Origin: Nageia nagi
Taxonomy: Eukaryota > Plantae > Pinophyta
Reading direction: 5' to 3'
Length of the DNA stretch: 64,000 bases
Assembly: GCA_050084985.1 (NCBI GenBank)
Contig: JBITNC010000001.1
Coordinates: forward strand, 86,862,001-86,926,000
The notes under the pieces were generated by a model. It ran no database searches and had not been told where the DNA came from. It saw only the letters and a program-made list of their open reading frames with translations. Shown in pieces: positions 5,225 to 62,167 of the stretch. Each line of letters begins with the position of its first letter. Within the stretch, counting starts at the first letter, position 1. Position numbers and translations under genes: made by a program.

Positions 5225-8200
5225 CTAGCAATTGCAACCAAGTGCAATGGGTACGCTGCTTTCCAAGCAAAAACATTAATAATAAATCATAGTAAATTTG
5301 ACATATTACCAAATTTTAGGTAGACTTATTCTTGTATTAAAGATATACTTTGCATCAAAATTCAAGTAAGAATAGAGAAAATTGAATGAACTAATTCATA
5401 ATGTGCAAGAAACTTTTAGACTGCTTATGGACTTACTATCTGCCGATTTCCTCCAAAAAGTATGATGTCATTACTCAAATCTAGCGGGGTCTATTGAATA
5501 TAGAGTTATGAAAAAGTCACGTCCAGGTGAAGTTTATAAGTCATTTCGGGATGTATTGTATTGAGTCTGTGTATTTGTCTAAGTCAAGTTCGAGCCCTAT
5601 TACCAGTCAAATTACTTATGTTTTGGTCTAGCATAGTTCGGGTCTTGTTTCCGGGTGTTATTATATATAGTCTATTTGTTCGTCTAAATTATACCTGGGG
5701 CCTATCTCAAGTCTAGTTAAGTTTCGGTCTTGTATAGTCGGGGGGTTATTTCCGAGCCCTGTTGTACATAATTGTCAGTTTAGGTTAAGTCATGTAGCAG
5801 GCAATGTTGTCACAAGAGTCAAGTCTGGGCCCTATTGTGAGTCAAATTACTTATGTTTTGATCTAGCGTAGTCCAAGTATTGTTTTCGGACCTCGTATAT
5901 AAATGTTAATTTATGGTTAAGTAATGTAGCGGGCGTTGTCGAAAGAGTCAAGTTAAGTAGGGCCCTTGAAAACCAAACAATGACATCATACTTTTCAGCG
6001 GAAATCAACAAACTCTAGACAGCTTCATCAGCAAGTGATCTTGATAGTTTTTCATAGTGGAAAATGTTCATAACTCTATATTCAACAAACCCCGCCAATT
6101 TTGAATGATGACATCACACTTTGTAGAGAAAATCGACAGGTAATAAGTTCCACGGATATTTAGCAACCCCCACCAAAGCATAACAATACCCGTTGAGGCA
6201 TAACAAGACCCACCAAGGACAAATAAATACCGTAAGTGGAGGTGAACACTTGGGATCACTTAATCAAAGGTGTATAACCCCCGAGACTCTGTCAACGTGT
6301 CAACTACAACTCATTTCCACATGGCAACAGTAATTGATCTATTATTAATCTTGGCTATAGATTACTGCATGTGCAGTAATGCTCGGGCTTATTAATTTCG
6401 TTTGCTTTCATGTTATTTGCTTTCTTTATTCAGTAGTTTATGTTTTTATCTCTTTCCTGTTACTTTTGACCTTTTTCATAGATAGGAACCAACCTATAAC
6501 CCAGTGATTGAGCAGAAAACCCCATGAGCCCATTGTCCCACCACTTTCTGGTCATTCAAGAACCTTGCTGTTATCAGGTGATGGAGAACTTTCCAGACCA
6601 AACCCTTTAGCGTTACATCATCTTGATCAACAATGACTTATAAACTTCACCCTAACATGGTTCATATGACTTTGTACAAACAACTCTCGCCTATTAACCA
6701 AATGGCAGTTTTGAATGACTTTCCACTGACTAAGACCCGATAATATGAACACAACCCGAAAATACCTTAAACAATACCAAGCCCTGACTAAGAATAACAT
6801 TTGAAATACATCAATATTGAACATGATAAGTATAAGCATGATATGTATATTGAATTTATTTTTGTGTCATATATTAAAAAATTTTGTTTGAAAAGTGAAA
6901 GTATATTAAGTTATGTTATTTGAAAAGGCGATATTTATTTATTGTATTAACATTTGATAATGACATTAAGCATTTTTCTTCTTTTTTGCGATGACTAACA
7001 TTTGCACTTGCTCCCATGCGTGCGTATCTGTGGAATGTGAAGGTAGGATGTATTCGTAGACAAGATAGTCCACAAACTCTTGAAATAGCTGTAAAAATAA
7101 GCCTTTGTCGATCAATGTTGCTAATATCAATTGTTGCCCTTTCAAGTGTAAGCCTTTGTGATTTGTGTATTGTCAAGGCCCAGGTCATTTTCAGTAGAAT
7201 TTGTCATCGTCGACCACAACTCAATGGGCATATAGAAACATATTTTGGGTTATTTTGATCCCAAAATGGTCCAATATAATTATGGAATTGAACTTATGTT
7301 GTGGACGTTATTTTCTAATGAATTATCATCTCCAACATTTGTTTCCATAGAATTTATTTCAAAGGATTTTGCGTTTATAGTTGTTGTATATAGAAGATTT
7401 GAAATATCTGTAGATGTTTCTGGTAACTCAGATAATGCATCTTCATTTAACTGTACTTCTTTGTAGTATGGATCAAATTTAATTTTGAATTTCAATGCCT
7501 CATGCACTTTACTTCTACAAATATTCCTGATCTTTGATATATTTCCTGTTCACTACTAATATGTCTAATCCATTTAGAGTTATGGGCAGATGAGTTGCAA
7601 TTGTAGAAATATCCTGTGGAAAACAAATAGTGTGACCATTATATTGTAGTTGGCCTCCTCTTGCATATGTAACCTAAAGGACATGACTAGTTCTTGCTAT
7701 CAGCATCTCCTCAATCTGAGTCAATTTTTGCAAACATGGAGGTTGTTTACCGGGGTCCATGTTGTTCCATTTTGAGAAGCGGTTACCATTCTTTTCTGAT
7801 TTACATCTATAAGAACTACATTTTCCATCTGTCTTGTTTTTATTCTTGGATATCATTCCTTGCACGCATAACATGTAGCCATATTTGAAAACTTGTCCAA
7901 TTTGGATCAAAATTTATTTCTAGCAATGTAATATTCTGGAGTGAAAGGTGGAGGTGAGTGGATTGGTGGAAGCATTGGAGGTGCATGTGTTAATATGGAT
8001 GTGCCTGTTTTTGTAAGATTATCAATGATTGGAAATAGTGCAGGCGAGTGAATGTGGGAAGGTAATTGAGGTGAAATTGTTGATGTGGGTATGGATGTTG
8101 ATGTTGCATCAATAACGATTTGTTGATTTTGTTGTCTTCTTGCTTTGAGATTATCTGCTCTAGCATGTTCATGTCTACACCTCATTTGATTTTCACAAGC

Positions 8201-9092
8201 TGTACTTGCTTGGATGATATGATTTTGTTGTTCTATGAAAAGGTATGTTGTATATCAATGAACAACTAATTCATCAAGTTATGTTATGTTGATTTTCAAA
8301 AGCCATTCATTAGTAATGAACATAACATTTTTTGTTGTATTTTTATTTTTTTTATGTTATCATGTGTATGTATGTAACAAGCAAGTAGTGAACAACTAAT
8401 TTATCACATATAACATAATGAAGGCAGCGGTAGAATATGGTACCATTATCACAATCAAGATAAAGTGCAAAGATTTTTCCTATTGAGAAATGCATGAAAT
8501 ATGCTCAAATCATATGTGGGTTCTAAATTCAAAACAAAAATAGTTAGACAAGTAAAATTTATTTATCATCGTAAAAACTAATTTGAGATATATTTGAAAT
8601 GTATTTCTCATGTGGCTAGATGACTTTACAAAATGGGTATTCAATGTATCGCTGAATTATGTAACTTATACATGTTGAAAAAAGAAGCAACTTTATATAT
8701 GCTTAATGCCTGTAATAGCAATGCTTTCTACTAGCTTGCCACGATATTGATCCACCTTAATGGACAAATGAAAAAGAAACTGACAGTTGACAATTTTCTC
8801 CAAGATGTGTTGTGCGCCATTTGATTCTGCTAATAAAAGTTGGAAAGTTTCAACATTGACATCCAACAAGGTTGTTGCTAGATGACTTTACAAAATGGGT
8901 ATTCAATGTATCGTTGAATTATGTAACTTATACTTGTTGAGAAAAGAAGCAACTTTATATATACTTAATGCCTGTAATAACAATGCTTTCTGTTAGTTTG
9001 CCACGATATTGATCCACCTTAATGGAAAAATGAAAAACAAATTGAAAGTTGACAATTTTCTCCAAGATGTGTTGTGCACCATTTGATTCTGC
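5225..9092 (-). mobile_element. Internally deleted second copy of the same HLE2-type element, inverted
   Basis: 9092-7290 is the reverse complement of ~12685-14536. It joins directly to the helicase C-terminus (QFHNYIGPFW...MTWALTIHKSQRLTLERATIDI...TAISRV). 6916-5378 mirrors 19700-21257, and 5410-5239 mirrors 18895-19070. Confidence 0.9.
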
Positions 9093-9559: not shown

Positions 9560-10640
9560 CAACATATTAAGTAAATAGTGAAAGGTGGAAAAAATGCAAT
9601 AAATGATATATCCGATCATTTTTGGATGCCACTACGTTGCTCAACTACAAGTATAAACGATGTGTCGGTAATGAATCCAACACATCGTAAGGATGCCAAC
9701 ACTGCTACTTTGAATCCAACAATGGAGAGAAACACAACTGCAACTCTGCAAGGACAACAGGCATCCTTCGTGGCTACCCAAAAATGTGTGATATTACTTT
9801 GTGTCGGCAGTGAATCCAACACATCGTAAGGATGCAACGAATTAAATACTGAAAGGTGGCCAAAATGCAATAAATGATATATCCGATCATTTTTGAATGT
9901 CGCTCCATTGCTCAACTACAATTACAAACGATGTGTTGGTAGTGAATCCAACACATCGTAAAGATGCCAACGTTGCTACTTTTAATCCAATAGTGGAGAG
10001 ACACATTTGCAACTCTGCAAGGACAACAAACATCCTTCGTAGTGTTAGAATGTATAATGCATTATTGTAAAAGTTATGTAATAATCTTCTATGTAAGTTC
10101 ACTAATACTTAAGGATATCATTTGATACCTTAAGTATTTAAGTGAATATGATAATGTAATTTGTCCTACACTCCATGTCATGAGCTTTCCCCTTGAGTAA
10201 AAGGATGTGCATGTCATGCTTTTGTACATTGAATAAAAGGGTGATCCAAAGAGGGATTTTGGCTTATAAATAGAAGGCTCCCTCTTTGTGATCACACACC
10301 AATTTGTGGAGTAAAATTATGCTAGTAGATAGTGTTTAGGAGTTGAGGTTAGAAAGTTTGTAAGAGTTCATATTGTGAGTAAAGTGAGATCTAGTTAGTG
10401 GATGTACTCCAAGTTGGAGGAACCACTTACATCTTGTGTTACATTGTGAGATTGCTTGTGAGTTTGTTAGTTGTGTTTGTGAGCTTTCAAAAGATCTTGG
10501 TTGTTTAGGAATTATATTGTTAGTGTTAGTTCCTTCACGTAGCTACCTAAAACTGTGTGATATTATGAGAAACACAACTGCAACTCTGCAAGGACAACGA
10601 GCATCCTTCGTGACTACCTAAAAAAGTGTGATATTTTCGA
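9560..10640. repeat. Modular direct repeats between the two Helitron copies (interrupted by the solo LTR)
   Basis: Recurrent aatccaacacatcgtaaggatgc (x3), gcaactctgcaaggacaac..catccttcgt (x3), aaatgcaataaatgatatatccgatcattttt (x2). Confidence 0.8.
10043..10537 (+). mobile_element. Solo LTR (495 bp)
   Basis: TG...CA ends, perfect 5-bp TSD CGTAG on both sides, TATA box (tataaata ~10265). The empty site matches the neighbouring repeat unit catccttcgtggctacc. Confidence 0.92.
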
Positions 10641-10815
10641 TATTGAAAGGGCCCGTCAATTCTTTAACAAGATGCATAATGCCACAATAGGTTTCATACA
10701 TACATGAAAGACTTTCTGTCAGATATTGTGGCTGTGAATGCCTTGGTTGTCATGTATGCAAAATGTGGAACGTATTGAAGGCACACAAATTGTTTGACAA
10801 GATGCATGATACAAG
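10640..10815 (+). pseudogene. PLS-class PPR gene fragments
   Basis: IERARQFFNKMHNA and SDIVAVNALVVMYAKCG / KAHKLFDKMHD. Confidence 0.75.
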
Positions 10816-11020
10816 CAATTTAATTTCCATCGAGGACAATGGTTGTCAAAGCTCTGATCAGCGATGTGAAGGGTTGATATCGTTTCAATCATGGATGGTG
10901 ATTCTGCATGTCTATCAACCGTGCGATCAAAAACTGAGCCAAAAAGGATCAAAGAGGAAATGCCTTACGGCATAATTATAATGTACAAGTCTATATCTTC
11001 CACCTTGTTTAAGGTAACCA

Positions 11021-12780
11021 ATGGTTGATTTAACTATAGATGCCATTGCAAGTATAGTTGCAAGCATGAATAGTCTTCAACCCTCTTTACAAGTACCATC
11101 TATAGAAATGATCAGCCAACAATCTTCTACAAATGTTAGGCATCAACTACAACTATCTAATGGTTCACATAGCCACCTAGCATTGCTTCCTGAGCAATAC
11201 AATGATCTTGTTTCAGAAAAAGCTTTGGACAAAGAAAGTATTGTTTGCCTACAACAATACACTTCCAAGATATTTAATAACTATACGTACATTCAACAAA
11301 ACAAACCACTACTTCAAATTGCCATTTTTTCATGTACAACTTTTGATTCGTTCATACATGTTATTTGTTTGCAGAGCTATTGTAATTGCTCGATTAAATA
11401 TACTTGCAAACAATGTCCCACTTATTGGAACTCCAATACCTCTCCTGCAAGCTACAAGTTCTCTTCCATCAAGTAGCTCCCATGACTACTTGGGTTCTTC
11501 TCAATCTTCATATGCTTCAACACAAGGACAACATTTGCAATGAAAAACACAATACAACACCTTTAGCACTAGATTCCATTAAGACATTGGCCTTATATAT
11601 GAGGGAATGGTCAATTGAAGGAACAGCAATAGAAAGTAATTCGTGAATATCATAATGCCACAGGTCACAATAAACTGTTCAAGTTCGACTTCATTGATAA
11701 AGAAGGGTCTGAGATACATATCACCTATGTCAATCAACTTGTTTTCCAATTCTATGATATTGTAAATTCAAATAATGTTTACATGATTTGCAATGGTCAA
11801 GTTAAATAAGCCAACCCAAGATATAATACTTCAATAAATCCTTTTGAAATAATGTTACAAAGCTCATCAACAATAACCCCATCCAACTGTGTTGAAAGTA
11901 CAATACCAACATACACCTAACATATCAAAAACATAGATTCGGTAGGCTCTTCATTGAATCATTCCATAGTGGATGTCATTGGCATTCTTGTAACAATTAC
12001 TGTTGCATCAACTATTTGTAAAAAAGATGGCACAAAATTAAAAAAATGCACAGCTACAATTATGGATACTTTTGGTTTTACCATTGATGTTACATTTTGA
12101 CGCCTTCATTGTGAAACCAAAGGAAAACAAATCTCAAAAATGCCTCTACAACCAAATCATCCAATCCTTCTAATCAAATCTGGGCATGTCAGTATCTGGT
12201 GTGGAAAATCTATAGAAACAATATTTTCAACCATAATCCTTATAAATCAAGATTTGCTAGAGTCTACTACAATACGAACATGGTACTCCAGTATGGGAAA
12301 TGACCAACCCATTCTTGTTTTCTCAACCAATCTCTTTTCCCCCAATGGCGTTTGCAAATCCAATTACCACTGCCACTATTCCTGAAATAATTTCTCTTGA
12401 CAAAGCCAATGTTTGCATCAAACACACTATTAAAAAACTCCATCTAGATGATTTTTACTACCTATCCTGCCCTCAATTAAATGACAACAAAAAATGTAAA
12501 AAAAAGTTGTCATATAAACCACCAATGTCCCAAATGTTCTATAGAACTTTTCGAATGTGACTTCAGCTACAAACTAAAGATGGACTTGCAGGATCATACA
12601 GATGAACTTATTAAAGTTACAGCATTTGAAGGAGCAGCAACAACCTTGTTGGGTGTCAATGCCGAAACTTTTCAACTTTTATTAGCAAAATCAAATGGTG
12701 CACAACACATATTGGAGAAAATTGTCAACTGTCAATTTCTTTTTCGTCCATCAAGGTGGATCAATATCGTGGCAAGCTAA
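11021..12780 (+). pseudogene. RPA1: RPA70/RPA1-like ssDNA-binding protein gene within the element (N domain + DBD-A/B/C)
   Basis: MVDLTIDAIA...LQLSNGSHSHLALL (RPA70N); GT-AG intron 11287-11374; LFKFDFIDKEGSEI (DBD-A); IVDVIGIL (DBD-B); FYYLSCPQ..KKCKKK..CPKC..YKLKMDLQDHT (DBD-C zinc finger). Stops and frameshifts present. Confidence 0.9.
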
Positions 12781-13158
12781 CAGAAAGCATTGTTATTACA
12801 GGCATTAAGTATATATAAAGTTGCTTCTTTTATCAACAAGTATAAGATACATAATTCAGCGATACATTGAATACCCATTTTGTAAAGTCATCTAGCAACA
12901 ACCTTGTTGGGTGTCAATGCTGAGACTTTTCAACTTTTATTAGCAGAATCAAATGGCGCACAACACATCTTGGAGAAAATTGTCAACTATCAGTTTCTTT
13001 TTCATTTGTCCATTAAAGTGGATCAATATCGTGGCAAGCTAGTAGAAAGCATTGTTATTAAAGGCATTAAGCATATATAAAGTTGCTTCTTTTTTCAACA
13101 TGTATGAGTTACATAATTCAGCGATACATTGAATACCCATTTTGTAAAGTCATCTAGC
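12637..13158 (+). repeat. ~260-bp tandem duplication of the RPA70 3' end
   Basis: gcaacaaccttgttgggtgtcaatgc at 12637 and 12895; the same duplication appears inverted at 8615-9092. Confidence 0.9.
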
Positions 13159-13486
13159 CACATGAGAAATACATTTCAAATATATCTCAAATCAGTTTTG
13201 TACATATCATTATTTATTTAAGCATAATGTTGTGTTTTACGATGATAAATAAATTTTACTTTTCTAGCTATTTTTGTTTTGAATTTAGAACCCACATATG
13301 ATTTGAGCATATTTCATGCATTTCTCAATAGGAAAATCTTTGCACTTTATCTTGATTGTGATAATGGTACCATATTCTACCGCTGCCTTCACTATGTTAT
13401 ATGTGATAAATTAGTTGTTCACTACTTGCTTTTTACATACATACACATGATAACATAAAAAAAATAAAAATACAACAAAAAATGCT

Positions 13487-16400
13487 ATGTTCATTACTAT
13501 TGAATGGCTCTTGAAAATCAACATAACAAAACTTGATGAATTAGTTGTTCATCGATATACAACATACCTTTTCATGGAACAACAAAATCATATCATCCAA
13601 GCAAGAAAAGCTTGTGAAAATCAAATGAGGTGTAGACATGAGCAAGCTAGAGCAGATAATCTCAAAGCAAGAAGATAACAAAATCAACAAATCTTTGTTG
13701 ATGCAACATCAACATCCATACCCACATCAACAATTTCACCTCAATTACCTTCCCACATTCACTCGCATCCACTATTTCCAATCATCGATAATTCTACAAC
13801 AACATGCCCATCCATATTAACACATGCACCTCCAATGCTTCCACCAATCCACTCACCTCCACCTTTCACTCCAGAATATTACAATGCCAGAAATAAATTT
13901 CAATCCAAATTGGACAAGTTTTCAAATATGGCTACATGTTATATGTGAAAGGAGTGATATCCAGGAATAAAAATAAGACAAATAGATGGAAAATGTAGTT
14001 CTTATAGATGTAAATCAGAAATGAAATGGTAACCGCTTCTCAAAATGGAACAACATGGATTCCGATAAACAACCTCCATGTTTGCAAAAATTAACTTAGA
14101 TTGAGGAGATGCTAATAGCAAGAATTAGTCCTGTCCTTCAGGTTACATATGCAAGAGGAGGCCAACTACAATATAATGGTCACACTATTTGTTTTCCTCA
14201 GGATATTTCTACAATTGCAACTTATCTGCCCAAAACTCTAAATGGATTAGACATATTAATAGTGAATAGAAAAAATATCAAAAATCAGGAATATAGTTTT
14301 TACTTTTGTAGAAGTAACGTGCATGAGGCATTGAAATTCAAAATTAAATTTGATCCTTACTACAAAGAAGTACAATTAGATGAAGATGCATTATCTAAGT
14401 TACCACAAACACCTACAGATATTTGAAATCTTCTATATACAACAACTATAAACGCAGAATCCTTTGAAATAAATTCCATGGAAGCAAATGCTGGAGATGA
14501 TGATTCATTAGAAAATAACATCCACAACACAAGTTCTTTTGTGGCAAACCTTCCACCAGCAAGGCGAGAAGTAGAAGAATTATGTTCTTTATTGCAGCTA
14601 GAAGAAGGACCTCCAACACCTACTATTGAATGGCCTCCCATTACTATATCACCCATAAATGAGTACAACACAGAAAGATTATTTACAATGGCATTTCCTG
14701 CTTTGTTTCAAAAATGCAAAGCATCATTCAAACAACAACCCATGAAAGAATTTAAGCTACATGAATATGCCTTGTACCTTCTAAAGTATCATGACAAGAG
14801 GTCTGGCCAACACCCAAGATTCCGATATTTCATCCTCAATAGAATGATGCGGCATCGAAGTCGATCAACAACATTTGTTTTCACTAAAAAAAAATATCAA
14901 TGATAATCTACCAACAACAATTCAGGATCTTCAACAAAGATTGAAAGATGTACCTAATGATAAGATTGTTGACCACTTGATGCGTTTTGGTTCAACTATT
15001 CGAGGTACAAAACCATTTTGGAACCTTCGCAAAGCAGAGCTATCAGACATGATCATTCAAATCGGATGCCCTATGCTATTCTTCACCCTCAGTGTAGTAG
15101 ATACAAAATGGGCAAACCTACACAATATCATGCCAACTTCATCACCAAGAAATCCTCAATCAGCTTTCAAATGGAGGATACAAAATATCATTTAGAACCC
15201 GCACCTTGTTGCATTGTATATGCACTATCAATTTATAGCATTTCATGAAGTACTGGAAAAGCTCCTTGATGCATAAGACTATTGGTACAGGTATATACTA
15301 TTTATCATATATTTAAATTCTCATTACATCCCTCCTTTTTCTTGGCTAATTATTAATATTATCAGGTATGAATGGCAACATAGAGGATCCACTCATATAC
15401 ATGGATTCGTCTAGTTGAAAAGAATACCAAACATTGCAAAACTAGAAAGGAATAACTTTCAATCAGTCCAAAATGCAATTAACTATTTTGATAAATATGT
15501 ATCTGCTTGAAACCACCATCCCCCTTCACCACAAAATTCAACATTTCCTAGACATGTTGTTGACAACCCTTGTCTATTGGATAAAACATCCATTATGTCA
15601 AAAAACCCTTTCAATGACTACAATGAATTAGCCAATTGTGTCCAACACCATACAAAATGCACCTTACAAACATGCCTACATAAGAAAGGATCAGCTTTTG
15701 AATGTCGATGTAAAGCCCCTTGGCCCCTGCAAGATATTTCAAGTCTTGCACTTGATGATAAAGGTCAACCTAAATACACGCCTGCTCGTAATAATGATCA
15801 TCTGAATATTCACAACCCAATTATTCTATCTATTTGGAGAGCCAACATAGACTGAAGTATGTTTTATCAATCATTGTTGTTCTCAAATACATTACAAAAT
15901 ATGCAGCCAAAGCTGAAACCAAATCCGAACCATACCATGCAATGCTTTCACGTATTTCATCAAACTATGATGCAGACAAACCAACATCAGTTGCTTTTCG
16001 TAAAATGCTTGTTGAGAACCTTGTTGACCGTGATATTTTAGCACAAGAAGCTAGCCAGTTTTTGCTAAAACTACCACTATCCTTATGTAGCAGGTCTTTT
16101 GTTACTTTAAATGTAAACCACAAATATTATCAATGTCTTCCAATCTCAATCCAATCTACACCAAGGAACAAATCCTTGATAAATACTTACATGCGACGAC
16201 CAGAGAATATGGAAAATATGTCACTCATTGAAGTAGCTCAAAAATGGACATTCAAAGAATCCAAGAAAAAAAATAGATGGAAAAAACATACTATGGAAGC
16301 AATTGTGCGAGTCTCTCCAAGATTCACAAGCATCCCTGCAAAAGATGATATTCATTTTATAAAATTTTGTCAAACTGAGCTACTACTATATCGGCCTTTT

Positions 16401-17547
16401 CGTAACATTCAAGATGACACTACAGATACAACAAACCAACTTATGGAACAATGGGAAGCATTCAAAAATAGCTACAATGCATGGCATGTACGTAGAACAA
16501 CAATGGAAACAACTAAAGAAACTAAAGAAAGCACATCCTCAGATGAAGAAATCAACTTAAAACAAAGCATCCAAAGTGAATGGCAAGCCTTGTCATCTAT
16601 ACATCCAAGGAATCCTTTGCAGATAAACGAGATAGACATGCTTGGCCAATGTGACATGGACATTAACCACAACTGGGGAGCTACTCATTTCACTCAACAA
16701 CAACAAATTATGACATCCACTTTCATAGAGTACAATCAACAAAATTTTCAGCTAGCACCCAATCCCGTTTAGAATTCTTATCATAGCATGTCACTTGAAC
16801 AGAAAAAAGCATTTGATATAATACATTCACATCTATATGCCAATCGTTATGAAGAACCTCTTAGGATGATTGTACAAGGAACTACATGAACAGGAAAGTC
16901 ACACCTAATTAAAAGAATAAAATCTATGCTCCAAACATCAGCTCCAAATGGTCAATCACCATTGCTACTTCTTGCACCGAGTGTTGCAACATTCAACATA
17001 GCAGCTTCAACAATTCGTTATGCACTTCGAATACCCATCAGAGAAATGAATGCCCTACAAGGGCAATCACTTGCAAACTTTTAGGAAAAGATGTATTTCA
17101 TTCGATACATTATTGTTGATGAAATGAGTTTCATCAGTCCGAAAATGATGGGACGAATTGATCAAAGATTGCAAGAAGCCTTCCCTGCAAATAATCAAAC
17201 ACCATTTGACGAGCAATCTATCATCCTCTTCGGTGACTTGGCACAATTACCACTAGTGAAAGATATCCCAACATATGCTTCAACTTCTTACGGAGGGGCA
17301 TTATGGCGTAGCTTCACAACCATCATAACATTGAAAACAATTTTTCGTCAAAGTGGTGACAATCCAATCCAAATTCAGTTTCGTGACCTTCCATCAAATT
17401 TGGGAAATGTAGAACCTACAATTGCATATTGGCAAACTTTGATGTCACGTACAAACTCCAACCTCGATCCTATCGAGCAATCCACTTTCTTCTCCTCCAT
17501 GTATCTTTACGCAACAAATGAAATGGTTTCACTACATAACAAACATA
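13487..17547 (+). pseudogene. Rep-helicase gene: DUF6570-like + HUH Rep + PIF1 helicase motifs I-III
   Basis: EEMLIARISPVLQV..GGQLQYNGHTICFPQD; motif 1 LFFTLSVVDTKW; motif 2 YRYEWQHRGSTHIHG after splicing a 75-bp intron (15291-15365); motif 3 YITKYAAK; Walker A QGTT*TGKS; IIVDEMS; FGDLAQLP; LKTIFRQ. Multiple stops. Confidence 0.92.
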
Positions 17548-18530
17548 TGTTAGAGTGTTAAGTACACTTAAGAGTATTTTTATTTATTTCCTAGGTTTTC
17601 TATTCTCTAGCTAGTTTGTTGTGGTGATAACCACTTCCTTGTCATTTGTGCAATTTACCTTCACGCATGGTTGGCATGTTGTTGTACATTAGTTTGTATT
17701 TGCCCTATTTATTTGGGCTCCATTCTCATTTCGTAGTGAATTCAGTTTGAGGATTTCAGCTTCTTTCTCGTTCTTGTGATGCTCTTGCATTTCCTTTTTC
17801 TAGGTGTGATTTGCTCTTCTCGCAAATCTTCACATTGTACCAGAGCTGGTTGGATTTTTGCAAGCATCCAGACTCAATGTGAAGCTCTCTCAGATCTGGT
17901 TCTTCTCTTGGGTGTCATGTGCTCTCCTCATGAGTTTGTGGATGTTGGCGTGATTGTTTTCAAGCCCCTTTGTTGGATGTAGCCCTCCTTTTGCGTGTTT
18001 TGTGGTGAGAGAGCATCGCCTCAAGTTACCGCTCCTCGTGCATTTTTTTGGTCTGGATCTGCTCCAACATTCCTCCTGCTCATGATCTACACTTGTTTTG
18101 AGGCATGAGTGGTGGCGTCTTAATCTGTAGTCCGTTGCTGGACTCCCTCCTACGAGGCATCTCTTCAACTCGTCACTTCCAGCTCGACGTCTCATCCAGA
18201 TCTAGCCCTGTGTTGTCTCTAGCTACTCAAGATCGGGGTGCTCCTCCACAATGACTAAAGATCCCTCTCAACATTGCTAGCCAACCAGCTCTCTACAAAT
18301 TTGCAATTCCATCTGCTAACATGGGAGCTCCTCTTTGCCCTCAGAAGGTGCGCTCTCTCTCAAGATTCTCTTCCCTCAGGCCGTGTTGTCTCTTGGCCTC
18401 CACATCTGTTGGGTCTGTTCCCTCTGCTCGCTCCCAACTCGACGCCCTCCAGGATCCTTTCCTCTCCTTTGCGTGGCCCCTTCTGTTTTTTGGTGGGCGG
18501 CTCTACAAAATCCTCCACCTCTGCTCAGCC
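17548..18530 (+). mobile_element. Truncated LTR retrotransposon 5' end (short LTR + PBS + leader) inserted in the helicase
   Basis: tgttagag at 17548 where helicase homology stops; ...tcaca at 17834 followed by degenerate tRNA-Met PBS ttgtaccagagc. Confidence 0.65.
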
Positions 18531-19409
18531 CTTTGCAAGTTTAAATAAAAATTTTGAAACAGCAATGGAAAGTCGAGTCTTAGTCAATGGAAAGCCATTC
18601 AAAACCGGCATTTTGTTATAAGGCAGGATTTGTTTGTACAAAGTCGTTTGAGCCATGTTGGGGTGAAGTTTATAAGTCATATGTCGAGAAGAGTCCATTC
18701 TATGAAAATCGGCAAATTGAACCCACAGAATTCTAGTGGTGACATCACATTTTTGAGTAATGATGTCAAACTTTATGGAGGAAATTAGCACTCTAAAAGT
18801 TTCAACAATACCCGCTGAGATGTAATAAGACCGCCAGAGTAAGTAAAAGCTGTAAGAGGAGGTGAACACTCGAGTCCACCTAACAAAGGGATTGTTCTTG
18901 CACATTATGAATTAGTTCATGCAATTTTCTCTATTTTTACTTGAAGTTTGATGCAAAATTTAAATTTAATACAAGAATAAGTCTACCAAAAATTTGGTAA
19001 TATGTCAAATTTACTATGATTTATTATTAATGATTTTGCCTAGAAAACAGCGTACCTATTGCACTTGGTCAAAGTCATGTAGCAGGCAATGTTATAAGAG
19101 TCCATGTAAATTGAACCCGCGAAACTCCAATGGTGGCATCACACTTCTTGGCGAGGATCAACGGGCATTAGACAGCTTTATCAGCAGGTAGTACAAACAA
19201 GCTTCAATAGACCTCGCCAGTTTTGAGTAATGAAGTCACACTTTTTGGAGGAAATTGGCGGGTAGCAAGTCCATAAGCAATCTAAAAGTTTCAACAATAC
19301 CCGTCGAGGTGTAACAAGACCCGCCAAAGTAAAGGCAGTAAGAGGAGGTGAACATCCAAGTCCACCTAATCAAGGGTGTATGACCCCCCGGACTCTGTCA
19401 ACATGTCAC

Positions 19410-19650
19410 ACGAAGATAAATTCCACTGAAAATGGCATGGGCCTTGACAATACATAAATCACAAGTGCTTACTTTTACAGCTATTTCAGGAGTTCGTGGA
19501 CTATCTTGTCTACAAACAATCCTACCTTCACATTCCACAGATAAGCACACATGGGAGCAAGTGCAAATGTTATTCATCGCAAAAAAGAAGTATGTTAAAT
19601 GTCATTATCAAATGTCAATACAATAAATAAATATTACCTTTTCAAATAAC
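19410..19650 (+). pseudogene. PIF1 helicase C-terminus of the same Rep-helicase gene
   Basis: IPLKMAWALTIHKSQ...TAISGV, with an internal deletion relative to the copy at 6916-7188. Confidence 0.85.
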
Positions 19651-21263
19651 ATTATTATATATTTTTGCTTTTCAGAAACAAATGTTTAAGTAACTTACTG
19701 TGTATATACATAACTTAATATACTTACACTTTCCAAACAAATTTTTTTATACATGACACACAAAAATAAATTCAATATTATATATCATGCTTATACTTAT
19801 CATGTTCAATATTGATGTATTGATATATTTCAAATGTTATTCTTAGTCAAGGCTTGGTATTGTTTACTGTATTTCCGGGTTGTGTTCATATTGTCGGGTC
19901 TTAGTTAGTGGAAAGTCATTCAAAACCGCCATTTTGTTATAAGGTGGGAGTTGTTTGTACAAAGTCATATGAGCTATGTTCGGGTGAAGATTATAAGTCA
20001 TTGTTGATCAGGACGATGTACCGCTAAAGGGTTTGGTCTTGCAAATTCTCCATCACCTGATAATAGCAAGGTTCTTGAATGACCAGAAAGTGGTGGGACA
20101 ATGCACTCATGGGGTTTTCTGCTCAATCTCCGGGTTATAGGTTGGTTCCTATCTATGAAAAAGGTCAAAAGTAGCAAGAAAGAAATAAAAACCTAAACTA
20201 CTGAATAAAGAAAGCAAATAACATGAAAGCAAACTAAACTAATCAGCCCGAGCATCACTGCACAGGCAGTAATCCATAGCCAAGACTAATAATAGATCAA
20301 CTACTGCTGCCATGTGGAAATGAGTTGCAATCGACACGTTGACAGAGTCTCGAGGGTTATACACCCTTGATTAAGTGGTCTTGGGTGTTCACCTCCTCTT
20401 ACAGTCTTTATTTGTCCTTGACGGGTCTTGTTATGCCTCGATGGGTATTGTTATGCTTTGGCAGGGGTTGCTGAATATCTGTGGAACTTATCACCTGCCG
20501 ATTTCTCCTAAAAAATGTGACATCATCGCTCAAAACTAGCGGGGTTTGTTGAATATAGAGTTATGAACATTTCCCACCATGAAAAACTATCAAGATCATC
20601 CGGTGATGTTGTCTGGAGTCCGTTGATTTCCACCGAAAAGTATGTCATCAACGTTGGATTTTCATGGGCCCTACTTCGCTTGGCTCTTACGACAACGCCT
20701 GCTACATTACTTAACCATAAATTAACACTTATATACAAGGCCCAGAAACAATACTTGAACTAAGCTAAACCAAAACATAAGTAATTTGACTCACAACCGA
20801 GCCTGGACTTGACTCTTGTGACAACATTGCGCGCGACATGACTTAACCTAAACTGACAATTATGTACAACAGGGCCCAAAAATAACCCCCAGACTATAAA
20901 AGACCGAAACTTAAGTAACTAGACTCGAGATAGGGCCCCAACATAATTTAGATGAACAAATAGACTATATATAATAACACTCGGAAATAAGACATGGACT
21001 ATGCTAGACCAAAACATAAGTAATTTGACTAGCAACAGGGCCCAAACTTGACTTAGACAAATACACAGACTCTATACAATATATCTCGAAATTACTTATA
21101 AACTTCACTTGGACATGGCTTTTTCATAACTCTATATTCAACAGACCCCGCCAATTTTGAGTAATGGCGTCAGACTTTTGGAGGAAATCAACGGATAGTA
21201 AGTTCACAAGCAATCTAAAAGTTTCTTCCACTTTATGAATTAGTTCATGCAATTTTTAATAAA

Positions 21264-22139: not shown

Positions 22140-23770
22140 ACTTCTTGGGTCGTCTCGAGGGTCATCTTATCAATGATGGCTCTAGTTTATCACCACAAGT
22201 ATCACCATTGTAAATCCAATCCTCTGCAGGCATAATAGGATATATCGGTGATTGGTAGGTTATCTAATAGGCAACAATTGTGTGGAAGATCTCAATGTTG
22301 TTTGCAATCGCAAAACGACGAAAAAGCAAAACACTAATGGCATGTACACAGGGATTCCAAAGAGTTGTCAATGTTGGCATGAGCATTGATGCTAGTGAAG
22401 ATCAACAATTTGCGATGTAGATTCAGAAAGGCATTCAAATAAGACATCAATCGCTAGAATAATTCAATATTGACGTGCAAATTCTTGTGATTTTTGCACT
22501 TTCCAAACTGTAGCATTAGAGAGGCCCAAGATATCGAAGAGTAGTCGCATGTCATTCATCATACCATATCATAAGCTAACGACAAATGTGCTCCATCATC
22601 AAAACGATAGGCTTCTCACGAGCTTCAAGGATCCACGAATTCAACGACTCAAAAATGTTTGAAGTGAAATGCCCAAATTGTCGACCTTGAAAATGGGCAG
22701 ATGCCCAGAATCTGGGCTCCGAGTCTTGGATCCATGCTACAGCCGCTTGAGATATTGTTGCGATATGTTCAATTTGTGTCTCAAATTCATCTACTATTGA
22801 TGCATATGTTGCATTCCGTAGATGGCCAACCATCACAAGATTTTTGACTTGCTTGCAGAAGTTCTTTGCTAAATGGCGCATGCAAAAAGCATGCTTAGCA
22901 ATAGGGAAAGCATGTTCAACCCCTTGGATGAGGCCCTTTTGATCATATGAAAGGAAGGTGTATTCTTGTTCCATAGGAGCATGCATTGCAATGGCATGTT
23001 GCCTCTTTGTCAAGAACTGTATCCAATTTGCATCATTCTCCGCTGGAACAACAACAAATGTAATTGGAAATAAGACTCCTTCTGTGTCAACAGCTATGGC
23101 AGCCATCAATGTTCCAAGGATTTTCCCTCGCAAGTGTGTGCCATCAATTCCCTATCACAAGCTGACAATGAGGAAAGCCACAAAGAGAAACATCATGTGC
23201 AATGAAGAGATGATGGAAGCAACAATTCTCATCCTCAACATCAACGACACTTCCCAGATTTGTGAGTTTGAGCTCATAATAGTACTTTCGCACCTTTGAA
23301 TATCCCAAATGACCCAATTAGCTCATTATTTACTCGCTCTTTTCCATGACATGGTTGCAGATAGGAAACGGTGATACCCTCATTTCGTCGCAAATCCTTT
23401 GTGATTTTCGTTGCATGATATGTAGGTGTATCTTGCAATCTAGCCTAAACCTTGGAAGCAACCCAATCAACATCAGATTGACGGTTGCAAAGATATTGAG
23501 TACTGATGCAAGTGTGTTTTGTATTGGTTATTTTGATGACAAACTCATTGGTGTTTGTTGGTTTGGAGGCATGAATACGCTAGGGGCATTGCAGTTCAGA
23601 GCACACAATAGTGTATCGATGTGTATCAGATTTTAAACCCCTTCATAATAATGAGCAATCATATCTTGCTTAACTGCAGTTTTCAGATCTGTGCTACATG
23701 GAAAAACTGCTCCATCAATGAATGCCATTACTATATTCTGTGCTTTGTCAAATAGTTCCATTCCATGATT
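22140..23770 (-). mobile_element. MULE/MuDR transposase pseudogene
   Basis: CP*RIHAS (MuDR domain); GTLMAAIAVDTEGVLFPITF...SYDQKGL...HAFCMRHL...TSNIFESLNS (DDE); CSC..GIPCVHAI (SWIM); ends at RRPKK. Confidence 0.9.
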
Positions 23771-47261: not shown

Positions 47262-50200
47262 GCCTAATCCCTAATGCCCTCCTACCACTGCTACTTGGAC
47301 ATATATCCACTCATACGTGGGATTTGGCAGTAAGTAGATAGGGGTCATATCATCAGTGTGACTGGATAAACTTGACACCCCGGCAAAAGATTTGGGAAGG
47401 TTCTTGGACTATAATTTTAGGTCTATGAAGGGTACAAACATTACTTTTCACCAACATTTTTGGGAGTAAGCATCTATGATGAATATTGACTTCTGTTAAT
47501 ACCTTGAACATACAATGAAATTAAGCAAATAGCATATAACATTCACGGATTCAAATGGTAAAGTGAGCAATTGTAAATATTTGTATTTTACCTAAGAAAT
47601 GTGTCAAAAATTTAGATGAGGATGTTAAAATAAAATATTTAAGAATAAGGAGTGATGTAATTTAATATATTGAAAAGTGTATTTTTACTTATAAGGTTTG
47701 ATAAGTAATGAATTGATTATTAGATTTTGAAAGACATTAAAATACGAAAAAAGTAATGTTTAAAATTAAAAAAGAAGAAATTTAGGTTTAATTGAATTTT
47801 TTTTATGAGAAATCATCTTTTGTAAGAAATTTTCTTAGGTTAAGTTGTTACGATTCAGAGGTATTTATACCGTCAAATTTATTAGAGGTATCATCCCTGC
47901 CTTATCTACATCTACCATCATCTAACAGGATTTGCAATTATATTTGCTTGTTAGAGGGGATGAGATTTGAATTTAGATCCCCACATTTTAATGAAGAGTT
48001 TTAATTACCCTACCCACCAACTCATCCAAAAATTCATGTAATTAAACTCTTGTTTTACCATGAAAATGCATAAAATGAAGATTCAATGGCCATTTTAACC
48101 ATACAGTATATTTTTACAAATACATGAAGACATATCAAGGTAATAAAAATGTATTGTATATGATTGTATTTCTTGTAGTACTATGCTCTTGTATATTTTA
48201 TAATTCTAACAATTTGGTTTTCTATATAAAAAGTATGAGTAGTCCTTGATACGATAATTTATTGATAGTAACATTGAAGAGTATGACATGATAATTTTTG
48301 CAATTTGTTATAGAAGCAATGTTCTTCATTGATTAGAGGTAATTTTTTTTAAATAATTCATTTGTTTATTTTTGTTTTGTCAAGCTCGTATATTCCAACT
48401 TGTATGAGTACAGTAAAATAAAATTATTAAATTATAAAAAAAATTAAGTTTTGAACTAATAATAAAATATTGTATGTTATGTATTCATAAATATGTGACA
48501 ATATTTTATATATATGATATGGAGGATGATGGAGATCTTTTTGCATAGAATGGATTAACTAAGACTCCTAACAAGTGGCATGGAAAGAAGAGCTTATATG
48601 TTATGGGGATGTCCATAAAATAGTTGCTTAGATCTTCAATGAATGCTTATGTTAGAAATAATAATACATTAGGAGAATAAATAAATGTTAAGTATTTAGA
48701 ATACTTAAGTTAGCACTAATTAATATATTAAGAGTAGTTAAATATTTATTTAGTAAATAACTAAAGTGGGAACCCTAACTCTCATTCATCCAATGTGTTT
48801 ACGCTATATTTTCATTTATGCAAATCATTATGTTTGATCGCTCAATTTTGATATGGTATCAAAACGGGTTTGATGAGAAGTTTTTCTTACTACCATAAGC
48901 TTGAGAAAAAATAGTATTACCTTAAAGATCCTTTTTTTCTTTCTATGAATCTACCATTAAGATGATTGGAGAAATAAAACTAAGGAGAAGAAGTATAGAC
49001 GCTTAAAAATAAATTCTTATTTATTAAATTATTCATTTTTATAGTATCAATGGATATTATTGTAAAAAAGGTTAAAATACATCCAATGCAATGTAATTAA
49101 TGTAAAAGGACCACTAAATGATGTAAGTGGTGTAAAATACCAAGAATAGCACCACAAGCTATGAAATATATGAAGATCTCAAGAAAAGAAAATATCAAAA
49201 TGCTACTATAAAAGAATATCAAAAGGAAAGGACTATTTATCGGATAATCGAATATCAGATAGGTTGACACATGCACATAATATTAGCTAAACAATAATAG
49301 TATTTTGTAACACCACATATTTGAGGATCTATTGTCTACTCTTCATTATGCTTTATGTTCTTTAATTTTGATATTTAATACAACATCTTTCATAGTGTTG
49401 AAATCATGTGTAAGCTTAGATCATCAAGTCCACATTGTGGTTTTGAGATCCGCACTAGCCATATTTGAGCAAAGAGTTTTATCTGCGACCTAAGGATATA
49501 AATATGATGAAAGGTAGTATTTTGTTATTTACGAATATAGATATATTATTATATATGCTTCAGTCATTACATTGTAGAGAAATAGTGCTTTGTTATATTG
49601 TATTACTATTATTTTTTGTGAACCCATTGTTTCAAGCAATCTTGCCCTCCTGGCTAAGATCTTGCATAATTCTATAATAGATTATACTTCGTCGATGTTA
49701 TGATCTACCTATTTATAAGGCTTTGACATCATGAGTATGGATGAGAATTAATTCAAACAAGTGATCCAATTATTGACACAAGCTCTTCAAAATAATAACA
49801 ATTGAAATACATCATAAGCTTCTACAAGTAATAATCAGCCTTCATTTGATTGTTGCCCTAGCTACAAAAGTATCAAAAATTGAGAACGATCAGATATCTC
49901 AACAAATGCAAGAAGACTATGATGGTATTTTCATTTCATGTTAATGTTATGTTGTTAGATAATATTTTGACAATTTCATGGGTGTGCTAAACAACATTCA
50001 CTCCTTTATTAATAACTGTTAGAATTATAATGTTGTTTAGGACATTGTGTAATTAATATGCTTAGCATATTAATAATCACCTAAATTTGGTTATTAGGTG
50101 ATAATGAGGTTCATGCATGGTGGGTGGAATAATATTCTCCACCAAACTTAAAATAATATTGTTAGGTGGAATAGTGTCTCCACTAACAATTAAATGTAAT

Positions 50201-51387
50201 TCTATATTATAACTTAGGGTTAACTAACCTATTATGGTTAGGTTAGTTAACTACCTAAGGTTAGTTTTAAATCCTATAAAAAGAGCTCATTTTGTAAAGA
50301 TTGGTAAGAAGATGAAAATAGGAAGTTGTTAATATAGATTTTAGTTAGTAAGGTCTTAAGCATGCAAGCTATGCTTCATGCTAAGGAGAGTCATGGTTGA
50401 GATTCATATGAATGTATGTTGTTTGAGAGTATAGTAAAAAGGAAACCTAAAGTGGAATGCTCCATGTGATGGAGGAACCACTATGCATCTTTTGTTACTA
50501 TGTGAGAATGCTTCTTGAGTTCTTAGTTTATAATGATTAATTGTTATATTTGATGAAGGTCTTACAAGTGTTCTTGGGTTATGGAATCCTTCAATTTCAT
50601 CAAATGGTATCAAATCCACCTTGTGGGATCTCTTCCAAACTTCAACTTGGAAATTTGAGGTAACTCACCTCAAATTAAGGTATATCTATACTCTTATCTT
50701 GTTTCAAGTTTTATTTGAAACTTAAATATTTAATCCATTTCAATTACTAATTATGAAGTTGAATTGAGATATTTCTACTAACATGTTGTATTTTGAGGTT
50801 ATTGAGCTCCAATTTACCTTAATTACATGTTAGTAGAATGATTATTTTTACCTATCTCTAATACTTGAGAGTTACAAGGGTCTCTCCTAACATATTGGCT
50901 ACATTAATTTTGCCAATTTCTTCATTAATTTATCCATGCACTAATATTGTTCTATTTTACAAACAATTTAGATACACTAGTTTTATCTAAATTTATCTTA
51001 CAATATTGTCTAAGGTTGTATTGTTTACACCTTACAATTGCATATCTTGTAGCAATATTAGATATCTAACATTTTGATAGTTCCATTGCATAATATTGAT
51101 CTAATTTTTAAGGTTAGAATTGTAACCTTCAATGTGATTAAATGATTTTTGCTATATTCTTTGCTTAACCATATTATAGCAATATGATTTGCAATTTACT
51201 TAACAATATTGCATTTTGTGCTTACTAAAGCCAACAACAAAACTATCAAAACAAAAAAAAAACAACACAAAGGGGGTCCATATTGCGTGTAGCACTTCCT
51301 GGCTTGACCCCTATGCTGGTGCTCCCCAACCACCCCTCTGATGGCACTTCCTTCCATCTATGTCATCCGCCATGCACAACACCATCA

Positions 51388-51870
51388 ATCCAACCATCTT
51401 TGCATTTAAGAAGCAACAAGTAACTACAATGTTTGCTTGACTTGCAAACTCTAGAAGGCACTCATTACCACCTTTTGCATCGATGAGGCCATCATTAATG
51501 GATATTTTATCCATACTCTCCATTTCAAAAGTGGTTATTTCATCTAATTTGTTTGAATTAGTAGCATACTTTGATCCTTAGTTTATTCTAATGGCAAGAA
51601 TTTTAACATTGAAGGGTCTCAAATGAACTACAATGTCCTTTCCAATATTTCCATATCCAAGAATCAAAACCATTTTTTCGTAAAGTGTTTCTCTAGTAGG
51701 CTCTCTTAAACTTCTTTCTTTAAAAGCTTTATCCATGCCTTTTTAATCTCGAAGAAAACCAAGAATCAAATATATAACATGTTCTACACATGGCAGTGAA
51801 TTTCCAATACCATTGCTAGAAATCCTTGCCACTTTCATTCCAAACTTTGTGGTAGCATCAATATCTACGA
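51388..51870 (-). pseudogene. Intronless D-isomer 2-hydroxyacid dehydrogenase fragment (At1g72190-like)
   Basis: VDIDATTKFGMKVARISSNGIGNSLPCVEHVIYLILG...ETLYEKMVLILGYGNIGKDI...KGGNECLLEFASQANIVVTCC; Rossmann GxGxxG motif; in-frame stops. Confidence 0.88.
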
Positions 51871-54800: not shown

Positions 54801-54899
54801 CTACCACTTATTTAATTGATTGATATCATACACATCATATCATGTTAAGATGGTAATAATGATAGTACCACTAAGCCGCGTAATGATTAAGTAATCATT

Positions 54900-55535
54900 A
54901 TGTTATTTTTCTCTCTTATCTTGACTATTAAATTATATAGTTTAATCATGAGCGATAGATGGATTGTCATGACTACCATAGAGAATTTTACACACATAAA
55001 AAGTTCTTTCCTGAGTTTTGATAAGGAAACAAACAAATGGGCAAACTTAGATAATGCCTATCTTCATCACGAACTGGTTGTAATAAAGGTCAAGATGGAG
55101 ATAATGGCCCATCGTTATGATATGCTACAAAAAAAAATTGTATATGTACAGTATTACCATGAACTCTTGGCTAAGCATAGTAAACTACTAGTTGAGAAAA
55201 ATATGTTGCAATTACAAGAAAAAGATAATGAGATACAAATTAGGCATGATACCAATAATAACCATTATAGAATGCAACGATTAAAAGAAAAGTGGAAGAG
55301 AAGAACCTTCCAGTATAAGGATATCCTTCAACATTTTGGTATTCACATTCCAAAGAAAATAGCATCTAAAACTTATGTGGGTCCTACAAAAGTTGAACCA
55401 CAATCTCAATCACAACAATCAACTACTCTGGTATGGAATGGACTTTCCTACATAAAACCCATGCATCCTTTATTCACCAAGCCCTTTTTTGAAGTAGGTT
55501 TGGTGAAATATCCCTCCAGGGGGAGTATTGGTTGA
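54900..55535 (+). CDS. Unknown ORF (211 aa, helical/coiled-coil-like) in the LTR element internal region
   Basis: Open in copy 1; homologous but disrupted at ~61222-61860 in copy 2. Confidence 0.45.
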   Translation: MLFFSLILTIKLYSLIMSDRWIVMTTIENFTHIKSSFLSFDKETNKWANLDNAYLHHELVVIKVKMEIMAHRYDMLQKKIVYVQYYHELLAKHSKLLVEKNMLQLQEKDNEIQIRHDTNNNHYRMQRLKEKWKRRTFQYKDILQHFGIHIPKKIASKTYVGPTKVEPQSQSQQSTTLVWNGLSYIKPMHPLFTKPFFEVGLVKYPSRGSIG

Positions 55536-55844
55536 ATTCTTATTGAATCCTTTATTCATTATTATAATATGTATGCGGACTTTCCCAAATCCAAGCCCCT
55601 TCTTTCCACAAGCAAGTTCTTGATGCAACAACTACAGCTCTATTCATCTATTTTTTTAATTCCATGTTGGGAAGGTGGATCCATTTTGATGGACTATGTT
55701 ACATTGCTAAATCCAAGCATCTTTCATTGATGGCTTTTGTTACATGCATTTTTTGTTAACTTTATGCTATATAGTGTTGATTTTGTTATACACCTTCATG
55801 GTAAGTTTGCTCTACATGAGGAACTTATTGTACAACTTGGCGTA

Positions 55845-56044
55845 TCTTGCACTATTCAGTTATCCATATATGAAGAACTCTTATGTGTCATTTGGCACTA
55901 TTTAGTTATCCATATATGAGGAACTCTTATGTCATTTGGCATTGTTCAGTTATCCATATGTGAGGAACTTTTATGTGCATGCTTTAGTTTGATCTAGCAC
56001 TGTTCAGTTCTCCATGTGTGAGGAACTCTTATGTGTTTTTTGGC
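55845..56044 (+). repeat. Minisatellite gcactattcagttatccatatgtgaggaactcttatgtg (copy 1)
   Basis: About 4 units, cut by the LTR at 56045. Confidence 0.85.
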
Positions 56045-58384: not shown

Positions 58385-58498
58385 AGTAGATCATTTTTTC
58401 CACATGGTGCCCACGATGGGTGGGTGATTTGTTTTTGACTTAGTAGATCATTTTTTCCACACAGTGCCCACGATGGGTGGGTGATTTATTTTTGACTT
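58385..58498 (+). repeat. ~56-bp tandem duplication
   Basis: tagtagatcattttttccaca..gtgcccacgatgggtgggtgattt.tttttgact twice. Confidence 0.9.
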
Positions 58499-61400: not shown

Positions 61401-62167
61401 GTTGCCACAAAAGTCGAGATGGAGATAATGGTCCATTATTATGATATGCTACAACAAGAGAAAGTTGTATGTATATAGTATTACTATGAACTCTTGGTTG
61501 AACATAATAAACTACTAGTAAAAAAAATATGTGGTAATTACAAGCCAAAGAGATTGAGATACAACTTAGGTGCGATGCAAGCAATAGCCATTATGGAATG
61601 CGATAATTAAAAGAAAAATGGAAGCAAAGGGCCTCCTAATATAAGGATATCCTTTGACACTTTGGTATTCACATTCCAAAGGAAATAGCATCTCAACCTT
61701 CTATGGATCCTACCAAAGTTGACCCATAATCTCAATCACAACAATTAGCCGCTCTAGTATGGAATGGACATTCCTACACCAAACCCACATGTCCTTTATT
61801 CACCAAACCCCTTTCTGAAGTAGGGTTAATGAAATATCCCTCCAGGAGGAGTATTGGTTGAATTCTTATTAAAATTTTAATTCGTTATTGTATATGTATA
61901 CAAACTTTCCCAAATCCAAGCCCTTTATTTCGAAAAGCAAATTCTTGATAAAATAATTACAACTTTGTTCATCTATTTTTTTTATGTTAAGAAGGTGGAT
62001 CCATTTTGTTGGATTATGTTACATTACTAAATCCAAGTTTTTTTTTGTTGATGACTTTTATTACATGCATCTTTTGTTGACTTTATGTTGTATAATGTTG
62101 ATTTTGTTGTACACCTTCATGATAAGTTCGCTCTGCATGAGGAACTTGCTGTATAACTTGACCAATC

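Follow-up and report, generated by a model that had tools for sequence, protein, structure and literature searches.

The DNA analysed here, a 64-kb stretch from Nageia nagi that we call the window, carries on its + strand between 11.0 and 19.7 kb a chain of stop-to-stop frames without a long open reading frame, hereafter copy A. Each frame was searched separately against Pfam and placed in phylogenetic trees as a separate piece. Read in order, the frames give an RPA70 gene (11021-13162) and then the domains DUF6570, Helitron_like_N and PIF1 of a fused Rep-helicase gene (RepHel, ~13.6-19.7 kb), and a second, inverted and shortened copy (copy B) lies on the - strand (Table 1). We consider it highly probable that copies A and B are decayed members of a single Helitron-like rolling-circle family of the gymnosperm genome, with a RepHel of the HLE2 branch, an RPA70 captured from a plant and Helitron-like ends.

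Copy A is a decayed copy, full-length but broken, in which both RPA70 and RepHel are pseudogenes. The RepHel shows at least four frame changes and several in-frame stops, one of which (16887-16889) interrupts the Walker A box (MIVQGTT-stop-TGKS), with further helicase stops at 16770 and 17082. Within the helicase a rearranged or inserted block (17560-19409) stands in for ~105 codons (~0.3 kb). A Pfam scan of this block returned no match; it holds fragments resembling the family's own 3' region, including a terminal segment (18895-19069) which ends 14 nt before CTAG.

Table 1. Position, strand and supporting evidence of the features of copies A and B in the window.
Feature	Position	Strand	Evidence
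RPA70-like pseudogene	11021-13162	+	Pfam on separate frames; domain order same in conifer loci
RepHel N-terminal part, upstream of DUF6570	13454-14099	+	Frame 13679-13945 matches L017 4514-4642 (39.5%, 6e-5)
DUF6570	14100-14423	+	Pfam PF20209, 1e-14; 60% identity to Cryptomeria P0176/P0177
Rep (HUH) domain, two frames	14427-15411	+	Helitron_like_N; co-linear alignment with gymnosperm proteins
Cysteine-rich segment, two-tyrosine motif and Rep-helicase linker	15511-16769	+	phmmer of 15798-16769, alignment, tree
PIF1-type helicase, N-terminal half	16773-17558	+	Pfam PIF1, 1e-6 (17085-17558); translation; alignment
Rearranged or inserted 1.85-kb block	17560-19409	+	Self-BLAST, copy B alignment, helicase alignment gap
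Helicase C-terminal remnant, TIHKSQ motif at 19447-19464	19410-19687	+	tblastn to conifer loci
3' non-coding region common to copies A and B	19688-21256	+	Homology to copy B ends at 21256
Copy B: inverted, 5'-truncated, internally deleted relative	5225-9092	-	92% and 85% identity to copy A; junction alignment
Candidate copy B 3' terminus, ATTGCA-CTTGGT-TGCAAT-TGCTAG, then T	5225-5247	-	Alignment; 12-mer TGCAAWTGMTAG shared with L007

A reading of the same DNA from its letters and frames (the sequence-only reading) had proposed a Rep with HLE2-type motifs behind a DUF6570-like domain, and both were recovered. A Pfam scan for DUF6570, Helitron_like_N and PIF1 matched all three on the + strand, Helitron_like_N in two frames (14848-15192, 6e-9; 15277-15411, 8.7e-4). 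Rep motif 1 (FFTLSVVDTKW, 15079-15111) and the HxH motif (EWQHRGSTHIHG, 15370-15405) are shared by the nearest relatives, and the catalytic two-tyrosine motif KYITKYAAK was found at 15885-15911. Canonical Helitrons (HLE1) have FTCNP and RGLPHAH at these Rep motifs, as opposed to FTLS and RGSTHIH in the window. The combination that defines a Helitron-like element, a HUH Rep with the HxH motif and two tyrosines fused to a PIF1 helicase, is present here in pseudogene form, and DUF6570 stands upstream of the Rep, as is expected of HLE2. Compared by eye, a stretch reading NARNKF (13883-13900) resembles the N-terminus of the Cryptomeria protein P0177, the window frame lying outside that alignment.

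Relatives of the RepHel were sought with phmmer among 1.84 billion representative sequences, the query being the frame 15798-16769 (324 aa). This gave 599 matches (best 2e-54), the top named ones from Taxus chinensis, Cryptomeria japonica and Ginkgo biloba, followed by mite and thrips proteins with DUF6570, Helitron_like_N and PIF1. The best 150 of the 599 matches and the tree members are DUF6570-type relatives, and there were no HLE1 rows among the references compared. Against PDB structures, a single protein and a profile both matched PIF1 helicases only. With the Ginkgo protein as query, phmmer recovered from Ginkgo and Cryptomeria a large number of proteins, 1300-1440 aa long, that combine these three domains, and more distantly fungal and animal DUF6570-RepHel proteins at ~29% identity. 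Among 24 long relatives, DUF6570 was detected in 15 and Helitron_like_N in 19; DUF6570 was present in every close relative with a complete N-terminus and in nearly all matches to the Ginkgo query. The apurinic/apyrimidinic (AP) endonuclease domain Exo_endo_phos was found by Pfam in none of the 24 long relatives and in no frame of the window, and the Cryptomeria protein P0168 terminates shortly past the helicase.

All RepHel pieces of the window are co-linear with the Ginkgo and Cryptomeria RepHel proteins, and the motifs YEWQHRGSxHxHG and KYxxKYAxKxE are common to gymnosperm, mite, thrips and Rhizophagus proteins. In a maximum-likelihood tree of the linker region, the window falls within a gymnosperm clade of 15 rows (support 100/100) comprising Ginkgo, Cryptomeria, Taxus and pine-like contigs, where its sister group is the pair of conifer contigs L017 and L025 (100/100). 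As DUF6570 is present and all nearest full-length relatives share it together with the same Rep motifs, we assign the predicted RepHel of the window to the HLE2 (Helitron2) branch, in a clade that was encountered here among gymnosperms only. The Helitron2 part of the label Helitron2/Helentron, under which the element had been introduced, holds on this evidence; the Helentron part does not in its strict sense, which calls for a C-terminal AP endonuclease, and by its predicted domain content the element is not a strict Helentron.

The RPA70 had been described as complete and with all four domains. It does precede the Rep on the same strand, and the N domain and DBD-A, DBD-B and DBD-C were each recognised, but the gene is not intact: its frame changes twice, stops occur in frame, and a tandem duplication of 262 bp (12636-12900 / 12894-13162) repeats part of DBD-C. 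Pfam matched Rep-A_N at 11018-11473 (3.6e-11). DBD-A (11633-11806) gave only a weak Pfam match (DUF223, 0.037); it shows 46% identity to the DBD-A of host RPA70 (1e-15), and its counterpart in a related copy matches tRNA_anti-codon (1.5e-7). DBD-B (11921-12382) begins with REPA_OB_2 (11921-12097, 1.9e-7) and is carried on in the frame 12101-12382, while DBD-C (12261-12777) contains Rep_fac-A_C (12481-12777, 1.9e-10), found again in the duplicated part (12886-13077). Of the features expected of an RPA70 (an N domain and three OB folds, with a zinc motif in DBD-C), the N domain and the OB folds are represented in the broken gene, DBD-A weakly. In the related copy L046 all four domains pass the Pfam thresholds (1.5e-7 to 8e-32), and a match to the human RPA70 structure 8rk2 (8.8e-38) agrees with membership in RPA70.

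Linkage of the two genes was examined in metagenome contigs, which were scanned with an alignment of eight gymnosperm proteins, the resulting loci then being probed by tblastn with the separate window pieces. The Pinus taeda model PITA_12080, a protein of 591 aa with four domains that stands for 16 member sequences, shares 86% identity with the RPA of L046, hence we regard these contigs as pine-like DNA. RPA pieces lie upstream of DUF6570, on the same strand and in the order N-A-B-C, in 13 external conifer loci belonging to at least three diverged subfamilies, at a distance of ~1.1-1.3 kb. Together with copy B, these loci establish the same-strand, four-domain RPA70 as a stable part of the element, and the expectation that it would be linked in other copies was borne out. 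In some copies of pine-like family 2 (L012, L013 and L007) the RPA gene has been lost by deletion. Relative to L046 and L026, ~2.4 kb is gone from these RPA-less copies (equivalent to L046 7151-9532), with the 5' leader joined to the spacer before RepHel. Another rearranged pine-like copy is L006 (1-860, 850-3725), where part of the Rep region is inverted and adjoins the RPA C-terminal domain.

Contigs from three public runs of two studies covered every 200-nt bin of 11000-16999, including the RPA and the spacer, with thousands of contig pieces that are 80-99% alike. Among these, C>T and G>A changes dominate, being 2-6 times as frequent as other changes, which probably reflects the decay of methylated repeats. 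Many of the contigs depart from the window just past 11300, 14222 and 15408, suggesting indels or subfamily breakpoints at these positions.

The RPA of the pine-like elements shows 36-42% identity to host plant RPA70 and 27-29% to the ant and fungal RPA70s matched. In a quick tree, the element RPAs (three separate window pieces, L017, L025, L008, Pinus taeda models and one Cryptomeria protein) form one clade, with support of 99 in the Shimodaira-Hasegawa-like approximate likelihood ratio test (SH-aLRT), nested within the land-plant RPA70s (SH-aLRT 100). This single nested clade, with the conserved position of the gene, provisionally indicates that a plant host RPA70 was captured once. A single plant capture would fit the remark made with HELIANO that HLE1 and HLE2 acquired RPA independently (PMC11417382).

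Copy B matches copy A at 12685-14536 (92% identity) and 19452-21256 (85%). It starts inside the RPA C-terminal domain, runs through DUF6570 and then skips to the helicase C-terminus and the 3' region, so that most of RepHel is missing, and it continues beyond the point where homology with copy A breaks to a terminus of its own. Both copies have the 262-bp RPA duplication. A coincident breakpoint of the two copies near 19410 was considered and rejected, as copy B retains ~90 nt more of the helicase than copy A. This retained sequence, absent from A, indicates that A and B were rearranged independently. It is possible, if rather less probable than separate origins, that a single insertion was duplicated locally in inverted (foldback) fashion and that the two copies are the resulting arms, which later decayed separately, a history compatible with our main explanation. 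They stand head-to-head only 1.9 kb apart, and the tandem duplication they have in common is skipped by contigs from related copies (joints near 12643-13123). The 8-15% divergence between A and B argues against such an origin, as do the helicase sequence in B that A has lost, the separate terminus and flank of B and the asymmetry of the arms about their centre.

The ends of the family were read from copy B and the pine-like contigs; copy A has no recognisable 3' terminus, its homology to B being lost at 21256, and a search of its 5' side for similarity to the pine-like 5' ends located none. On the 3' side, L007 and L013, which are independent insertions of family 2, are alike through TTTGCA-ACATTAGG-TGCAAA-TGCTAG and then diverge, although both continue with TT. 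Across 290 kb, both strands included, the 12-mer TGCAAWTGMTAG is present only at the end of copy B and at the alignment-defined 3' boundary of L007. In L010, ~0.5 kb past the helicase, a 148-nt near-perfect palindrome (6108-6256, z = -12.4) runs from CTAGCTTTGATATA to TATATCAAAGCTAG and is followed by TT, the end reading AAAGCTAG/TT (a slash marks the junction here and below); this palindrome is a giant foldback terminus. CTAG is followed by T in four of four cases (copy B, L007, L013 and L010). On the 5' side, L012 and L023 become alike at TTCATTCTAAACT, with A before it in both (A/TTCATTC). Junctions of family 2 accordingly read A/TT...CTAG/T and those of family 1 are readable as T/T, no empty site being available for either. 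In the L013 element, the one pine-like element tested, inverted matches extend to 11 nt at most, with one mismatch, a length reached by 38 of 200 shuffles, and the repeats of 12-16 nt expected of HLE2 were not found in it.

Two further candidates were set aside. The first two-copy 3' boundaries in the pine-like contigs were dropped, because a sensitive BLAST search shows homology resuming past indels. The 10-mer GCCTTACGGC at 10962 was tried as a terminal inverted repeat or stem-loop, but it is in direct orientation relative to the L007/L013 site and found no further support. The 12-mer ATGCCTTACGGC is present at 10960-10971, 50 nt upstream of the window RPA start and nowhere else in the window (0 expected), as well as at L013 7420-7431 and L007 6534-6545, ~35 nt before the 3' terminus of family 2.

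HLE2 elements are described as having terminal inverted repeats and T/T targets, and HLE1 elements as starting with TC (HELIANO, PMC11417382). The ends found here share the 3' hairpin and CTAG/T with HLE1, start with TT rather than TC (L012/L023) and accompany a protein with DUF6570. Taken from the pine-like copies and copy B, they agree in layout with the proto-Helentron: an HLE2-type RepHel without endonuclease, 5' TT, 3' CTAG and insertion at A/T. The element ends therefore look canonical Helitron- or proto-Helentron-like, and not HLE2-like. That the true termini are instead of the HLE2 type, with short inverted repeats and a T/T target, and that the hairpin-CTAG sites are internal or due to chance, seems to us unlikely. 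Such termini are the norm for HLE2, HELIANO re-read the proto-Helentron as having inverted repeats, our first pine-like boundaries proved premature and family 1 allows a T/T reading. Nonetheless, the homology of L007 and L013 ends exactly past TGCTAG, copy B, from another genome, finishes with this 12-mer as well, the L010 palindrome ends in CTAG, T stands behind CTAG in every case and the L013 element yielded no inverted repeat.

The hairpin with CTAG and a following T might be taken, together with the RPA known from plant Helitrons (PMC4067079), to mean that this is simply a canonical plant Helitron (HLE1) and its customary RPA, in which the HLE2-like motifs have been over-read. We regard this as very improbable given the DUF6570 match at 1e-14, in a domain reported as HLE2-specific and carried by every close relative with a complete N-terminus, the upstream position of the RPA, which is the HLE2 pattern and is downstream in HLE1, and the 5' TT, not TC, of the pine-like relative. 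Least credible of all is that the RPA70 belongs to the host, as a gene or pseudogene, and merely stands beside the transposon: its closest named relatives are indeed host plant RPA70s, and the window N, A and B pieces are about equally similar to host RPA70 and to the pine-like element RPA, but order, strand and spacing recur in the 13 external loci of several diverged subfamilies and in copy B, the three runs show the RPA stretch to be no less repetitive than RepHel and the element RPAs form one clade.

Several points nevertheless weigh against the explanation of the window as two copies of an HLE2-branch family with a captured RPA70 and Helitron-like ends. Both the 5' and the 3' end of copy A are undefined, and the hairpin of copy B is short and insignificant by itself (z = -0.58). 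Each pine-like boundary is defined by two copies only, no empty sites were found for the element boundaries, and the ends of family 1 are not settled and show no obvious fit to the CTAG layout. The HLE2 assignment draws on DUF6570, on the closest relatives and on the motifs in common with them, and not on a tree of HLE1 and HLE2 together. Furthermore, the RPA tree was built on fragments with long branches, and its single clade could partly be owing to long-branch attraction.

Under the proposed explanation, the family would consist of a four-domain RPA70 (N, DBD-A, DBD-B, DBD-C) followed, ~0.5-1.3 kb downstream and on the same strand, by one large RepHel with an N-terminal region, DUF6570, a HUH/Y2 Rep nuclease and a PIF1 helicase, without an endonuclease. 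Its predicted ends would be a 5' TT after A and a 3' hairpin of 6 to ~70 bp, followed by 1-2 nt, CTAG and then T. In intact relatives, the Rep tyrosines would nick the 5' end and become covalently attached, the PIF1 helicase would unwind 5'->3' as far as the hairpin-CTAG terminator, the element RPA70 would coat the displaced single strand, and the circle or strand would be pasted between A and T. Copy A itself is incapable of transposition, with stops and frameshifts in both genes.

HELIANO (Li et al. 2024, PMC11417382) reported HLE2 in 13 land-plant species from six classes, DUF6570 as specific to HLE2 and absent from HLE1, and RPA upstream of RepHel in HLE2, limited to subgroup a, and usually downstream in HLE1. 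Described in these terms, subgroup a resembles the window family in having DUF6570 before the Rep, RepHel as one protein, an upstream same-strand RPA and a presence in land plants. The window family differs in its lack of terminal inverted repeats (in the single pine-like element tested), its hairpin and CTAG ends and its A/T-looking target as opposed to T/T. In Phytophthora infestans, the proto-Helentron (Thomas et al. 2014, PMC4067079), with 5' TT, 3' CTAG, insertion at A/T and no target-site duplication reported, is alike in layout, through its HLE2-type RepHel without endonuclease and its ends; however, its host is an oomycete, and in place of RPA70 its cargo comprises SET and other genes. 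This layout has so far been reported from Phytophthora only. Its ends were re-interpreted by HELIANO as terminal inverted repeats with a 5' stem-loop, and no proto-Helentron-like sequences were found in HELIANO's 404 genomes (PMC11417382).

Canonical plant Helitrons (HLE1) have in common with the family a RepHel, an RPA70-derived gene, a 3' hairpin with CTRR and a T after the end, but lack DUF6570, start with 5' TC and usually place RPA downstream (per HELIANO). RPA genes in Helentrons were described earlier (PMC4067079). Animal Helentrons with RPA, such as the mite Helentron-Mo-1A (PMC4067079), combine an HLE2 RepHel with a separate RPA gene, as here; they differ in possessing a C-terminal AP endonuclease, subterminal inverted repeats and T/T targets, and the RPA of Helentron-Mo-1A comprises DBD-A and DBD-B only, whereas that of the window family has four domains and appears plant-derived.

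Given HELIANO (PMC11417382) and the earlier reports of RPA in Helentrons, the architecture of an HLE2 RepHel with an upstream RPA is already published, and the element is not of a previously unknown kind. The sequence-only reading had also suggested a little-described plant lineage. This stands in part: the land-plant HLE2 elements with upstream RPA in HELIANO count against it, while our literature search found no open paper naming gymnosperms for the HLE2 branch.

Other sequences surround the two copies. An open reading frame with MULE transposase and Transposase_mut matches (22576-23133, - strand, 2.4e-11) lies ~1.3 kb past the break of copy A at 21256, and a Mutator-like insertion may have removed the 3' end of that copy. 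Between copies B and A (9569-10040, 10560-10900) there are a 271-bp tandem repeat and frames reading like fragments of a pentatricopeptide-repeat gene (...MYAKCG...LFDKM...), for which Pfam gave no match; the stretch may be of host origin, or it may be cargo that the element captured into its 5' leader. At the far end of the window (50017-64000) are two direct repeats of ~6.0-6.4 kb, 82-92% alike, with 104-bp and 43-bp tandem arrays near 62.2-63.2 kb.

As copy A is dead, it has no functional consequence of its own. For the family, our results confirm that the HLE2 branch is old and abundant in gymnosperms, with intact-looking proteins in Cryptomeria and Pinus taeda, and the linkage of RPA70 and RepHel across diverged subfamilies argues that a single-strand-binding protein is useful to the transposon. 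The canonical-looking ends on an HLE2 enzyme bear on the relation of the two Helitron groups and also on annotation, since programs seeking inverted repeats around HLE2 transposases would set wrong boundaries here. We lean, with little more than even confidence, towards the wider view that gymnosperms at large (Ginkgo, Cupressaceae, Taxaceae, Pinaceae-like contigs and Nageia nagi) carry an old and abundant lineage which combines a RepHel of the HLE2 clade, Helitron1-style termini without inverted repeats (A/TT to CTAG/T, the hairpin ranging from 6 bp to a 148-nt palindrome) and a four-domain RPA70, captured once from a plant host, with its protein-interaction N domain. If true, the proto-Helentron would have in this lineage its counterpart among plants, the clade of the transposase and the architecture of the ends would have been decoupled in Helitron evolution, and tools assuming inverted repeats for HLE2 would mis-delimit its elements.

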